Shown: positions 2,255 through 8,873, counted from the stretch's first letter. The stretch: DNA of 64,000 nucleotides from Blepharisma stoltei ATCC 30299 (GCA_965603825.1 CBFDEM010000011.1:1054001-1118000), one strand, 5' to 3'. A program made the numbers and translations. Notes: generated by a model from the letters alone, not told the origin.

Positions 2255-3019
2255 ATGAGCAATTCCAATGACAAACTTTTATTTTTAAATCTGACTGAAG
2301 AATCTGAAAGATATCCATACACGCCAGCAATAAGTGATTTAAGCAGCTGAAATGATAATAAACAAATGATTTTTTTGAAAAAAAATATCCCATCGCCTAG
2401 GTCTCCCTTATCTTTAAGAAAAACTCCAATTAAAATAAATACTGATTTTAATGAAAAAACAAATGATAGTCTGCATGTGAATTATTTAGTGTTTAGCCCA
2501 GCTGAATCTTCAGCTTACAATCCTACCCCAAAGATGCGTAAAACTACGCCTATGAAATTTAGCTTGAAAAAAGAAGATTGCGAAGGGTTTTTAATTGCAA
2601 AATGCAATTGTATAGCTGTTGGGAAGTTGCCTGAAAATGATCTTATAAGTTTATCATTTTCTGGGTCTTGTGGCTCACCTAACTGCATCAATAAAAACAA
2701 AGTCGAGATAATTCAAAGGCGCACTAAAAAGCTAAAAACTAAAAGCCTTGAAAGGAAAAACACCAACCAAACTGACCTCAATAAGCAATCCCGCACAATG
2801 AAACTTCGTAAAAAACTAATAGAACTAAACAAATCAGTCAGCCCCAAAAATGTAGTAATTAGCATAGAAACCACAAAGAAAAATGATTTTTCTAAATCCA
2901 GCTCAATGAGAAAAGCATTTTCATCAAATGTAAGGCTTCCTTATATCAGGGTAAAGCCAATTTTTCATCTTGGGACGAGTATAAGAAGAGATTATCATAA
3001 TTTAAGTATGATAAATTAA
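2255..3019 (+). CDS. Hypothetical basic, Ser/Lys-rich protein (~254 aa)
   Basis: ATG 2255 is in frame with ORF 2366-3019 through one TGA; ends TAA. Confidence 0.65.
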
Positions 3020-3046
3020 CCTTTTCCATTTATTCCCTAAATAAAT

Positions 3047-3985
3047 ATGCTTATGGATAACTTTACAAAGACCTATAAAACTAAGCAATGCAGGAACTTT
3101 TCAAGCTCGATAGGCTGCACCTTAGGCCTGCTTTGCAATTTTTATCACACAGAAGAGGACCGTCGAAGGCTTCCAGATCAAACTTATGAGCCTATCCTCT
3201 GTATAGAAGCTGTGATCTCTGATGTATGTGCCCATGAATCTTGCCAATACTGCAGAAACCAAGTGGAGTATTTATTCCACCCTTCAAATTATAAAACTAA
3301 AGAATGCATATATAGAAGGGCAAGCCGTGAATGTATTCATAAAATGTGCCCATATACACATCCTGAAGATAAATCAATATCTCAGCAAGTCGAAGAAATT
3401 AAAGCATTTGAGCCGTCTATTATAGTGCCAGCAGTAGAATTAGCCTCACCTGAAGAAAGAAAGTTTTATATCTACAAAGAAGAAATTAAAAAATATGAAG
3501 ATCGAAAAACTGAATTTAAATCTTGCTCTTATAAGTCATTTAATGTGGCCTACGCTGTAGATCTCGTAGTTCCATACGTCAGCGCATTTTTAAATACAGA
3601 AGGAGGGACCCTTTATTATGGAATCAGAGATGATGGAATGGTGACTGGCGTCATTTTAACGAGAAAAGTTAGAGATAATTTTATTGTCACTTTGGACTCA
3701 AATTTAAATAGATTTAGCCCTCATTTGACTGGGGATGAATATGAAATAAAATTTGTGGACGTCATGAAGAAGGAGGATTTGAAGAAAATCAATGATATGT
3801 ATGTCATTGAGATTAAAGTGGAGAAAAGCAAAAATAATGAAGTTTATTTTACACATAAGAGTGAAGCTTATATTAAAAGAGATGCAAGCATCACACAGCT
3901 GAAAGGATTGTCATTAGTTAAGTTTTATGAAAAACGAAAAGGAGCGGCGTCTGGAGGGGCTACATCTGAAGGAGCTGCGCCATAG
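3047..3985 (+). CDS. Tandem CCCH (Unkempt-like) zinc finger + Schlafen AlbA_2 domain protein
   Basis: YKTKQC-x8-C-x5-C-x3-H and E..FHPSNYKTKEC...C...CPYTH fingers. C-terminal YEDRKTEFKS and YVSAFLNTEGGTLYYGIRDDG are the AlbA_2/Schlafen signature. Confidence 0.88.
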   Translation: MLMDNFTKTYKTKQCRNFSSSIGCTLGLLCNFYHTEEDRRRLPDQTYEPILCIEAVISDVCAHESCQYCRNQVEYLFHPSNYKTKECIYRRASRECIHKMCPYTHPEDKSISQQVEEIKAFEPSIIVPAVELASPEERKFYIYKEEIKKYEDRKTEFKSCSYKSFNVAYAVDLVVPYVSAFLNTEGGTLYYGIRDDGMVTGVILTRKVRDNFIVTLDSNLNRFSPHLTGDEYEIKFVDVMKKEDLKKINDMYVIEIKVEKSKNNEVYFTHKSEAYIKRDASITQLKGLSLVKFYEKRKGAASGGATSEGAAP

Positions 3986-6608
3986 AGAGTTTTGGGGGAT
4001 TTTATTATTAAGTTTCAAGAATATTAATATAAGGAGTTTAAGCCTAATTAATTGAAAAATTTAGACTGAAGTTAATAAATATAGAAAATAATGAAAATCC
4101 TTGAAACCATGAGCTAAGAAAGCAGATTCAAAGTATTATCAACTTTTGATGGGTAAAAATGCCATAATTCTGTCAATGCTTTAGAAGAATTATTTTGATT
4201 GACTATAAAATATGCATAATAAGAATTATCAGACACATATCACTACCAAAAGATTCATATACCTAAAATTTGTCTCAAAAATCCTATATCTATACATCCT
4301 CTAATTTTTCTTCAAATTCAGACAAAGCATTATTATTAATCCAATGGTTAGACCAGGACTATAAAGTCGCTCTGCTTGTTTATATTCTTCATCGGTCTTA
4401 GTAGCAATGATCCCATTCTTAATTGAGGCAGAAAGGAGAAATTTCTGTTACAATTTTCAACCCTAATAAAACCTTCTCAAAAGGTAGAAAATTCCTCAGA
4501 ATAAAAATTATAATAGAGATTGCTCGTATGTTTGGAATAATTTTATTAGAAATTGTCCTGCTAGGAAACTTTACATTGTGGTGCACTAAATGGGATGAAG
4601 GTTGACTAAAAGTTTACTTCATTAATTTTACGATGATTTTGTAAGGATAGTAAAAGGAACTGCATTTATGACTCAGTTCATATCGTTGAGGGGCTAGTTT
4701 TTTCTTAAAATCTGTTCGTTTTTTAAAAAGATTGTTAATTAGGCCGTTTCAAATTGCTTGTTATACTTTAATTGCAGAAAACACTTCAAATAACTGCATG
4801 AATGTATCAGTAGATCATCTAAGGCTTTATTATACAACAGGATATGGATTTCCTTAATGAATCAATTATTTAATCTGTGCCAAGAATTAGGATTACATCA
4901 GCCTAAGTTTTTAATAAATTGAATACTTGTCTATAAATAAATATTAGCTTGAAAGATTAAATTTATTTTACACAAATAACAAAATAAAATTAGTTTAAGC
5001 ATTAATAATGATAATAAAAAGCTTTTTAATTATAAAATTTTCATATTAATAAAATATTAGAACGATAATCAATCCGAAAAGTGACCGCATATAGCTTTAC
5101 AGATTGAATTATATGCACTAATAGGCTGATCAGTTAATTTTTTAATAGCATAGCTCAAATCTTTAAGCTATAAAACTGTTTAAGTAAATTTTTTAGCATT
5201 AAACATAAATGATCACTGTTGTGTCTTTAAATTGCTTATCAAGTTTCTGAGAAATAGATTTAGATTTATTACTAAAATTACTTAGCATTATAAATATATA
5301 TCTGCTATGCTTAATCTTTTTATTTATTTAAAACAATTTATATTGATTTAGGCTATGATATTATTAGACTTTTTCTTATAATATCAACGCATTATAAAAC
5401 ATTAGCGGCTTTATTGTTAATTAATCACTTTAAACAAACTAAAAACCTGCCGTTAAGCATCATATTTAAATTTCAAATTATGTTGAACAAAAGTTTTATA
5501 AATTATAATGGCTTTCTATTTAGGCTTCATATTTTAAATACTTTAAAATTCAAAACCTAAATAAAAATAATTTCGTTAGCAATAATTATATATTTTATTT
5601 GAAATTTTGGTATTATAGGCATTATAAATTTATTCTATAATGAATATTTATAAGAAAAAGCCTAAATAGGTATTATTAAAGCGGGCTACTATTATGCTTA
5701 AGTTAGCGATTATTTGTCTTAATTTTTTGTTGTCTCGTTCATGAAATACAAAATATAAGTATTTTTGCCAAAGAAAGTCACGGAGATACCCTAAAAGCTG
5801 AATTTAAACTTATAACGAGTTATAATAGACAGACTGACCACCATCTTTTTAATGAATCCATTACTGACTATTCATAAATGGAACGAAACAATAACTTGAT
5901 CAAATTTTCCACACAAAAAATCCTGCTTAAATAACTATTTTAAGCAGTAGAATCCAAAACTTTTAAAATCTAAATTTTTTTTCAAGCAATAAGTTGCATA
6001 AACATCTATGATATAAATGTAATTAAACTATTTAAATGAGATATTCAAAATTCATCAAATCAATACTTTACATTAAAAACGAGCAAGCTTATGATTATAA
6101 AAAATTATTATATTGAAAATACACTGTGCTATTAAAATTGTTGTAGGCTTTACAAAGCTCTTATAGCGAGCCCTAATAGTTTTTTTATTTATCTCATGAC
6201 TGACGTTGCTGACTGATTAGCTATACCTTCCTGGATAAAAATGGTGACTTATAAATGGGTTTTAATTCAATAATAAAGTTTCAAAAATGCCAGATGAGTA
6301 AATTTAATAACTCAAACTGATAGTTATTTTTCTATTTTCTTCAAAACTTTCCTTCTTCTCACATTTTCGTGATTGTCAGCATCTTCGCTTCTATTTTTGC
6401 CTCATATCCTATCCATTTTGAACTTAAAAAAAATTGAAATCAGAACTTTTTCTCCGATTTTTGGTGCAATTGTTGATTATGGTTTTTTAAAGCTATAGGA
6501 TCTTTAATTTGCTTTAAGATCTCATTCCCTTCACTCGCTTTCTGCCCTCAAGTCTTTTTTTGCTAGTTCATTTTTGTCAGTAACGTTTTGTTATAATATA
6601 TAATATAA

Positions 6609-7409: not shown

Positions 7410-8873
7410 ATGTCTGATGCAAGAAGTAGAAGGAATGAGCACTTTCAATCGTCAATTTTTGAGCCTGCCCCTATTTCTAATAAGAAAGAAATAAGTGGGA
7501 GAGAAAATTATAACACAGGACAACAAAGACAGCGATCATGCGATACATTTAATTCAGAATACAGTAAAAGTAGACAAGGGGAATATAGAAAAGCGCAGGA
7601 AAATAGATTTGATGAGTATGAGACAGATAAATATAGCAGAAATAACAAGGACGAGCGCCAAAATTTAAACCGCTCTCTGTATGAAGGGTCAAATACTTCT
7701 TCATATAAGCCAAATGATACACGAAACTTGTTAGGAAACGACCAAACTAACTATTATCAAAGAGAAAACAAAACAAAACCATTTTATGATTTTGAGCCAA
7801 AATATGCAGAGACTTCTGCATTTAATCGAAAATATGCAGATTTATATGGAAACTCACAATCCTCGATTCCAAGCTACCCTAGAGAAGAAGCTCTATCAGA
7901 AAGCCGAGATATCTCTTCAAGGCAACGAAAGCAAGATAACATGGAATCAAATATTTTTTATCCTCCACAGTATCGGAATTTCAAACAAGAAGCCCCTCAA
8001 GAATCCCAAAGTTCCCAATTTTCCCCAGAGTCCAGAAGTGCTGAAATGAGGGAATCTTCTGTATTCGGCAAACAAGAGCCTCGACAAATCCCTAATCAAG
8101 CCATAGAAACATCTAATGACGACAAACGAAGAAAAAACCACATGTACTCAGACATTTTTGGTGAGCCAGAATACGAAACTAGTAGCAAAAAGCAAGATAA
8201 GCTAATCGCAGCTACTCAAAAATGAAGTGAAAACGACGCAAGAACTTATACAAGAGAAGAAGACTATGACGTCCACAAATTTAAATCAAAAAATCTCTGG
8301 GGTGATGAAAATTACTATCAAGAAAGAAATTTAACCCCTAAGCCAGCCAGAATGCCAGCACAAAATCCGCAGCAGTATAAAACAAGAGAAATGACCAGCT
8401 CTATGCAAGATTATAATGAATTTCCTACAAAGCAAGCCCAAGAGCCTGCTATAGCTGAATATGATTTAGAAAACCTCCCACGAAACACTACCAAAGATAG
8501 CCTAAAAAGGATTTGCAGCAGCGTCCATATTGTTTCGATACAAATTGATACTGATAATCTTACAGGATTTTGTAAAGGAACAGGGAAAATGATGATAAGG
8601 ACTTCAGCTAACGCCGAAAAAGACTTGCAAAGGCTGCAGCTAGATTTAGCAGACGAAGACATTGTGCTGAAAATCCACAGAGAAAATGTCGGGCTAAAGT
8701 CAAATTATTCAGAGCTGAGTGGGCTTAAATGGAATGACCCACATATAGTAGGAACCCCATCAGAGCATTCAGTAAAAAGCAAAGAATCATATAATAGGCC
8801 TGCATTGGACGAAACTTATATGGCAAATATACAATGGCAACGGACTAAAAATCCAAGATATGAATATAGGTAA
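7410..8873 (+). CDS. Low-complexity protein with repeated S-x-I/V-F motifs and C-terminal RRM-like domain (~487 aa)
   Basis: ORFs 7410-8225 and 8352-8873 are in frame across TGA 8223-8225. LENLPRNTTKDSLK...DNLTGFCKGTG is RNP2/RNP1-like. Confidence 0.75.

Follow-up and report, generated by a model that had tools for sequence, protein, structure and literature searches.

Schlafen nucleases matter in antiviral immunity, in cancer drug response and in piRNA biogenesis, and SLFN11, SLFN13 and SLFN14 cleave tRNA or rRNA. To our knowledge, all Schlafen-fold proteins with an E-x4-E-x-K motif tested so far have proved to be metal-dependent endoribonucleases, and the AlbA_2 domain was originally described as a nucleic-acid-binding domain. 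How Schlafen nucleases choose their targets is still being worked out. In Regnase-1/ZC3H12A, a small protein, a CCCH finger is combined with an endoribonuclease for the degradation of selected mRNAs, and Unkempt is reportedly a translational regulator. Ciliates depend on small RNAs for DNA elimination.

The bacterial protein pSlfn carries a single Schlafen domain and cuts the anticodon arm of tRNA (PMC13056530); Cash, also with a single Schlafen domain, cuts the T- and anticodon loops of tRNA (PMC13462974), and SAMD9 is a single-domain, metal-dependent tRNase that cuts tRNA-Phe (PMC10246899). In SLFN-pAgo, tRNA cleavage follows guide-dependent target recognition, and two lobes pair to form a horseshoe in which one gives the active site and the other the basic patch; single-lobe SLFN domains function as oligomers imitating this two-lobed core (bioRxiv 10.64898/2026.05.29.728809). 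PUCH cuts capped piRNA precursors (PMC10567574). The features that define active Schlafen nucleases are E-x4-E-x-K, SAFxN and an Asp (bioRxiv 10.64898/2026.05.29.728809; PMC13056530), where the SAFxN motif was defined in the former report. Functions other than that of a nuclease are known for some mammalian Schlafens, and several of the mammalian proteins are without the catalytic residues (PMC13462974). The ZnF4-6 cluster of Unkempt binds a UAG core motif (PMC12136788).

Here we describe a gene of Blepharisma stoltei ATCC 30299 that joins an Unkempt-like cluster of three CCCH fingers to a Schlafen domain. The window, that is, the whole stretch of 64,000 nucleotides that we analyzed (positions 1054001-1118000 of CBFDEM010000011.1; GC content about 20-39%), lies in a 41.46-Mb assembly of 64 contigs. 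The Schlafen-CCCH gene occupies 3047-3985 on the plus strand as an uninterrupted ORF from ATG at 3047 to TAG at 3983-3985. The starts of orthologues coincide with the Met at 3047 (for example, MENLTRVYKTKQC), and M3 (3053) is a possible alternative start. The features of the gene, in window coordinates, are the following.

3047..3985, plus strand: complete CDS, 312 codons and TAG, intronless, 312 aa
3074..3148, plus strand: CCCH finger 1, TYKTKQC lead-in, C15-x8-C24-x5-C30-x3-H34
3200..3280, plus strand: middle finger, C52-x8-C61-x4-C66-x2-C69, then E..FH78P linker, from the alignment with 5elk
3290..3361, plus strand: CCCH finger 3, NYKTKEC lead-in, C87-x8-C96-x4-C101-x3-H105
3362..3451, plus strand: linker, with a predicted helix (residues 106-120) and then an acidic low-confidence segment (residues 111-135, pI 4.1)
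3452..3946, plus strand: single Schlafen/AlbA_2 domain, residues 136-300, counterpart of the mammalian SLFN catalytic C-lobe
3497..3520, plus strand: E-x4-E-x-K motif, E151-D-R-K-T-E156-F-K158
3581..3607, plus strand: Schlafen box SAFxN and Gly pair, SAFLNTEGG (S179-A-F-L-N183-TEGG)
3620..3634, plus strand: GIRDD, G192-I-R-D195-D196, with the third acidic residue, D195, at 3629-3631
3986..4070, plus strand: 3' UTR with cDNA cover, to the end of the contig from run X4

The transcript evidence consists of public contigs from four runs of one 2022 study. We take these four runs to be cDNA because their contigs are devoid of 15-nt introns and leave the AT-rich spacer at 4673-6008 uncovered. In run X4, a 1014-nt contig is colinear with 3062-4070 with zero gaps and zero differences. 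From the layout of the cDNA contigs we conclude that the Schlafen-CCCH gene is transcribed, intronless and distinct from the gene upstream. Ten substitutions in the ORF distinguish variant cDNA contigs, which come from a different allele or strain; eight of the ten are synonymous as compared to 19% expected if substitutions were random (P = 6e-5). Since the variants are mostly synonymous, we can also conclude that this frame is under purifying selection. In one variant contig, indels begin right past the stop codon. The Schlafen-CCCH gene is real and transcribed.

The gene upstream (2255-3019, plus strand) encodes about 254 aa with TGA read as Trp, has no match in Pfam, and ends only 27 nt before the Schlafen ATG in the same frame, a spacing that is extremely tight for separately transcribed genes. 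We considered this ORF (2255/2366-3019) as an N-terminal extension of the Schlafen protein, and rejected it since two in-frame TAA codons (3017 and 3038) lie between the two. A connection by way of an intron was rejected because no 15-nt GT..AG intron bridges the gap. Since the orthologue starts match 3047 and the upstream cDNA contigs end at 3024-3026, we can also eliminate the possibility that the upstream ORF is otherwise part of the Schlafen gene. A genetic code with TAA and TAG as Gln was dismissed because Gln codons here are all CAA or CAG, because neighboring ORFs merge when TGA is read as Trp, and because the lengths of the orthologues (296-331 aa) are similar. With TGA as Trp, the ORFs called at 7410-8225 and 8352-8873 (plus strand) under translation table 11 become one 487-aa ORF (7410-8873), hence the bacterial code splits genes in the Blepharisma genome. 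The joining of ORFs by TGA as Trp, the 15-nt GT..AG introns of a nearby gene (see below) and the GC content are all consistent with a heterotrich.

A minus-strand gene at 1500-2230 contains two 15-nt GT..AG introns (1677-1691 and 2185-2199) that are absent from the public cDNA contigs; one cDNA contig omits 19 nt at 1673 instead of 15, which may reflect alternative splicing or an assembly slip. On the other side of the Schlafen-CCCH gene, cDNA contigs cover 4102-4668 in all four runs, and this segment contains no ORF of 60 aa or longer on either strand, even with TGA as Trp. Possible explanations are a non-coding RNA, a long UTR, or a gene that is interrupted by several tiny introns. The adjoining spacer (4673-6008; GC 21-27%, no cDNA cover) is unusually long for a compact genome. 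The neighborhood of the Schlafen-CCCH gene provided no link to known genome-editing genes.

A preliminary description of this DNA had proposed three CCCH fingers followed by a Schlafen (AlbA_2) domain, and profile comparisons confirm this architecture. Residues 9-118 are colinear with RNA-bound ZnF4-6 of mouse Unkempt (PDB 5elk): the single sequence matches with an E value of 2.1e-8, and the family profile with 1.4e-10. Foldseek matched the finger region to the same structure with a probability of 0.99. The general Pfam models remained below their thresholds: zf-CCCH scored 15.9 bits against a gathering score of 20.5, zf-CCCH_UNK scored 15.2 against a cutoff of 31.1, and the UNK-like model scored 14.3 against 27. 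One orthologue (P0003) carries PF23035. The four ligands of finger 3 are all kept in 27 of 27 family members, those of finger 1 are kept in 25-26 of the 27 full-length members, and both fingers contain an aromatic residue two places past the third Cys. The middle finger has R70 at the position of Unkempt's His, the C/R variant that the preliminary description had also reported, and EYLFH78P downstream. C69 and H78 are conserved in 25 and 27 of the 27 members, as compared to 12-13 for each of C52, C61 and C66, and the Cys ligands of this finger are poorly kept outside heterotrichs. Because C69 and H78 are better kept than the other three positions, zinc ligation in the middle finger is uncertain; from this pattern, C69 or H78 is a possible fourth ligand. 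Unkempt-like CCCH clusters without a Schlafen domain occur at at least eight more loci in the Blepharisma genome (contigs C56, C20, C1, C14, C33, C41, C15 and C53; L004-L010), and this finger module is an expanded family in Blepharisma.

The second module matches Pfam SLFN_AlbA_2 (PF04326) over residues 151-285 with 67 bits (cutoff 25.3, E = 2.8e-18); like the match of the fingers to Unkempt, this is far more than chance would give. A profile made from 121 related domains recognizes SLFN14 (E = 9e-21), SLFN13 (7e-19), SLFN12, SLFN11 and SLFN5; the family profile finds SLFN14, SLFN13, SLFN12 and SLFN11 with E values of about 1e-21 to 1e-14, and aligns E-x4-E-F-K and the Asp with these four proteins column for column. 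E151 and E156 fall on E206 and E211 of SLFN14, K158 on the motif Lys, and, by sequence alignment, D195 on D249 of SLFN14 and on the second Asp of the GVDD motif of SLFN13. In the chain of the SLFN14 E211A mutant (9jr9) the Ala stands opposite E156. E151 and E156 are each kept in 24 of 27 fusion proteins, K158 in 25 and D195 in 22; D195 is also present in 77 of 94 other AlbA_2 domains, and a few family members are without E151, E156 or D195. N183, G192 and G201 are invariant in the 121 aligned domains, and G186 and G187 are nearly so. Judging from this alignment and from the fold match described below, the acidic triad appears to be intact. The conserved residues R206-K207-x-R209 and R278 are candidates for a basic patch.

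An AlphaFold model based on a 14-sequence alignment (pLDDT 59) had an unusable motif strand and was superseded by a model based on a 121-sequence alignment, with a mean pLDDT of 84 and values mostly between 92 and 98 per 10-residue block in residues 141-300. Structural comparison by VIA-align matched this model to the tRNase domain of SAMD9 (Z 16.0; rmsd 3.5 Å over 171 residues for 9o0d and 3.4 Å over 169 residues for 7ksp), to the C-lobes of SLFN5, SLFN12, SLFN11, SLFN13 and SLFN14 (Z 12.4-14.1; for example, model residues 134-270 with SLFN11 192-327), and to bacterial DIP2311 (Z 11.4). For the C-lobes of SLFN11, SLFN12, SLFN13 and SLFN14, the rmsd is 2.2-2.6 Å over about 129 residues. The model contains no N-lobe: residues 134-300 alone align to SLFN, and to the C-lobe only, and residues 1-118 are the fingers. 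As modeled, the protein is a single-lobe Schlafen and not a two-lobed SLFN horseshoe core. The preliminary description had given E-x4-EFK (3497-3520), SAFLNTEGG and GIRDD correctly, and had spoken of a catalytically intact Schlafen domain and of a Schlafen core. E-x4-E-x-K, SAFxN, the aligned Asp and the match to the catalytic C-lobe speak for the former; the latter is to be replaced by a single lobe.

The same description was not aware of any characterization of the fusion and had named it the best candidate for a new system. The Blepharisma genome contains two AlbA_2 genes in all, each of them fused to CCCH fingers; the paralogue on contig 23 encodes 331 aa with 48% identity, and is identical in every residue to an NCBI "unnamed protein product" of Blepharisma stoltei (P0004), in agreement with the origin of the genome. 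An exhaustive profile search returned 4713 matches, the top ones of which span fingers and nuclease. Members that carry an organism name come from Stentor coeruleus (SteCoe_7169), Climacostomum virens, Furgasonia blochmanni and Protocruzia adherens, and the fusion is also found in several Paramecium species (GSPATT00029501001, GSPATT00024817001). The family spans at least three ciliate classes and the separately placed Protocruzia, with most matches being without a taxon label. It is present in one or two copies per genome with 46-56% identity between genera, and its members are labeled only as "unnamed", "C3H1-type domain-containing" or "Schlafen AlbA-2 domain-containing". Extra homologue searches with the family profile and with a Paramecium member added no new taxa. 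A literature search, including the Paramecium and Stentor gene identifiers, found no study of a Schlafen-CCCH family in ciliates. By this search, the fusion is uncharacterized. Its occurrence extends well beyond this locus, in a ciliate-wide family of proteins that are already in public databases.

The nearest AlbA_2 relatives without this fusion carry a cold-shock domain (bacterial in at least one case), a UBA and a cold-shock domain (for example, in Paulinella), two CCCH fingers and WWE, ankyrin repeats, or an RRM. The cold-shock, UBA plus cold-shock, CCCH plus WWE and RRM partners indicate that this Schlafen subfamily has repeatedly been combined with binders of single-stranded RNA. In a quick tree of 120 AlbA_2 domains, the CCCH-fused ones are strongly clustered (15 changes as compared to 38.6 with shuffled labels). 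We make no claim of a single origin from this tree because its backbone is weak and the architecture labels are crude and pattern-based. Two relatives differ in their arrangement. P0015, an NCBI protein of 2337 aa from a 401-kb contig, contains 23 stretches that match the family profile and at least eight EDEKMEVK motifs, which form three runs with a spacing of 181 residues inside each run. This protein looks like a series of Schlafen-like domains in tandem. A bacterial fusion of cold-shock and AlbA_2 domains (P0175; L015 4001-5170) is preceded, at a distance of about 520 nt, by an upstream gene for a MazE/PrlF-type antitoxin. This is a hint that a close relative of the ciliate AlbA_2 domain may be part of an arrangement similar to a toxin-antitoxin system.

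How may this protein work? From its domains, its fold, the conservation of its motifs, the fusion of related AlbA_2 domains to other RNA binders and the activities of characterized relatives, it is somewhat probable that the protein is a metal-dependent, oligomerizing endoribonuclease, the fingers of which bind single-stranded RNA and select or license targets. Catalysis, RNA binding by the fingers, oligomerization and the nature of the substrate are inferred. The protein would be a small RNA enzyme of the cytoplasmic type, with E151, E156, K158 and D195 as the active site of a divalent-metal-dependent Schlafen endoribonuclease. The three-finger cluster would bind a short single-stranded RNA motif, and this binding would bring the nuclease to particular RNAs, or license it on them. 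Because only the catalytic lobe is present, and by analogy with the single-lobe Schlafens of prokaryotes, we propose that the protein would form a homo-oligomer or pair with its paralogue, and thereby create a two-lobed RNA-binding cleft as in mammalian Schlafens. The two Blepharisma paralogues might function as a heterodimer.

As in Regnase, the cut may occur in the RNA to which the fingers are bound; alternatively, it may occur in tRNA once an RNA has been sensed, similar to pSlfn. Since characterized Schlafen-fold nucleases mostly cut tRNA and in some cases rRNA, with PUCH as the exception, an mRNA or a small RNA is only one option for the target, and the fingers may serve to regulate the enzyme instead of aiming it. 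The low copy number and the steady conservation of the family are mild arguments for housekeeping RNA processing or decay over an arms-race effector. It is unlikely, in our estimate, that this family represents the first eukaryotic Schlafen nuclease aimed by a built-in reader of single-stranded RNA that cuts particular mRNAs or precursors in a Regnase-like pathway. If this were nevertheless true, a finger cluster with a UAG-reading relative would have given rise to a ciliate-wide decay or processing pathway on the Schlafen fold. In general, one catalytic lobe fused to sequence-reading fingers would offer a simple model of the way in which a choice of targets can be added to this fold, in a family that is conserved across the RNAi-tractable ciliates Paramecium and Stentor. 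With this family, the Schlafens would also gain a branch among non-animal eukaryotes, and ciliates possibly a new route of RNA decay or processing.

Among the alternatives, the one that survives best, even though we consider it rather unlikely, is that of a stress or defense tRNase: the Schlafen domain would cut tRNA or rRNA, and the CCCH fingers would sense foreign or aberrant RNA instead of aiming the cut. The top fold match is indeed the tRNase domain of SAMD9, fused domains serve as triggers in prokaryotic relatives, and the combination of two CCCH fingers, AlbA_2 and WWE recalls antiviral proteins of the ZAP/PARP12 type. Moreover, all characterized Schlafen-fold nucleases except PUCH cut tRNA, and some also rRNA (PMC13056530, PMC13462974, PMC10246899). 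However, immune effectors typically expand or evolve fast, and this family, with one or two copies per genome, 46-56% identity between genera and mostly synonymous cDNA variants, does neither; no virus or trigger is known.

Distinctly less likely is a non-catalytic RNA-binding regulator of translation, stability or localization, similar to Unkempt, in which the acidic motif would serve binding or folding. The E-x4-E-x-K motif and the Asp are conserved across ciliate classes and across a set of 94 related domains, and this conservation is hard to explain without catalysis, even though AlbA_2 was first described as nucleic-acid-binding, Unkempt is reportedly a translational regulator, and the SAMD9 domain was crystallized as a DNA binder (7ksp). 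Some mammalian Schlafens are also inactive (PMC13462974). If the protein proved to be inactive, or merely a tRNase, it would be an ordinary addition to a well-known superfamily.

A DNA-directed factor (in transcription or developmental genome rearrangement) or a PUCH-like processor of small-RNA precursors is very improbable: ciliate DNA elimination relies on small RNAs, HTH regulator is the annotation of many bacterial AlbA_2 proteins, and PUCH is an example of a Schlafen fold that processes small-RNA precursors (PMC10567574), but the protein has no DNA-binding module, its fingers are of the single-stranded-RNA type, its neighborhood shows no link to known genome-editing genes, and the trimeric, membrane-anchored make-up of PUCH is absent. 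Of the roles suggested in the preliminary description, small-RNA precursor processing during genome rearrangement and defense against symbionts found no support here, and neither did a piRNA-like function.

The finger-guided or finger-licensed endoribonuclease that we favor can be compared with six known systems. With mammalian SLFN11, SLFN12, SLFN13 and SLFN14 (and with the fold of SLFN5), the ciliate protein shares the C-lobe fold, E-x4-E-x-K, SAFxN and the catalytic Asp. Unlike these proteins it has no N-lobe, no inter-lobe zinc finger and no linker or helicase, and consists of just 312 aa with a CCCH cluster at the N-terminus. The SA domain of SAMD9 and SAMD9L (9o0d, 7ksp), a single domain of the AlbA_2 type, is the best structural match, and SAMD9 is a proven anticodon nuclease, but it has no detectable sequence similarity to the ciliate protein, and its site (E184, E196, E218, D241) could not be mapped onto it. 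SAMD9 is also a very large multi-domain STAND protein, unlike the 312-aa ciliate protein.

Unkempt ZnF4-6 (5elk) and the ciliate protein have three colinear fingers, the YKT lead-ins and the E..FHP linker in common. In contrast to Unkempt, the ciliate protein has one finger cluster instead of two, no RING, no disordered effector region, and an Arg in place of a His. With one three-finger cluster and without a C-terminal RING, it is not an Unkempt orthologue. Regnase-1/ZC3H12A is a functional analogy only, since it has a PIN-like nuclease and a single finger, and shares neither sequence nor fold with the ciliate protein. PUCH (C. elegans TOFU-1/TOFU-2/SLFL-3/4) is a Schlafen-fold endonuclease that makes a sequence-dependent cut in a non-tRNA substrate. 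However, PUCH acts as a hetero-trimer, depends on an m7G cap and a U at position 3 of its substrate and contains no CCCH fingers, and as compared to this trimer of SLFL proteins, Blepharisma has just its two AlbA_2 genes, both fused to CCCH fingers. No result of this analysis ties the ciliate gene to small RNAs.

The general arrangement of the ciliate protein is that of pSlfn, Cash and SLFN-pAgo, which also combine a single catalytic lobe and an E-x4-(D/E)-x-K motif with a sensing or guiding module. Since this prokaryotic principle of a Schlafen nuclease with a sensor or guide has been established since 2025-26, the novelty of the ciliate fusion is lower than it would otherwise be. The prokaryotic proteins act as oligomers and cleave tRNA. 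Their partner modules are Ig-like, Csx15 or Argonaute/GHKL, none of them CCCH, and they belong to bacterial defense, whereas the ciliate fusion is a conserved eukaryotic gene.
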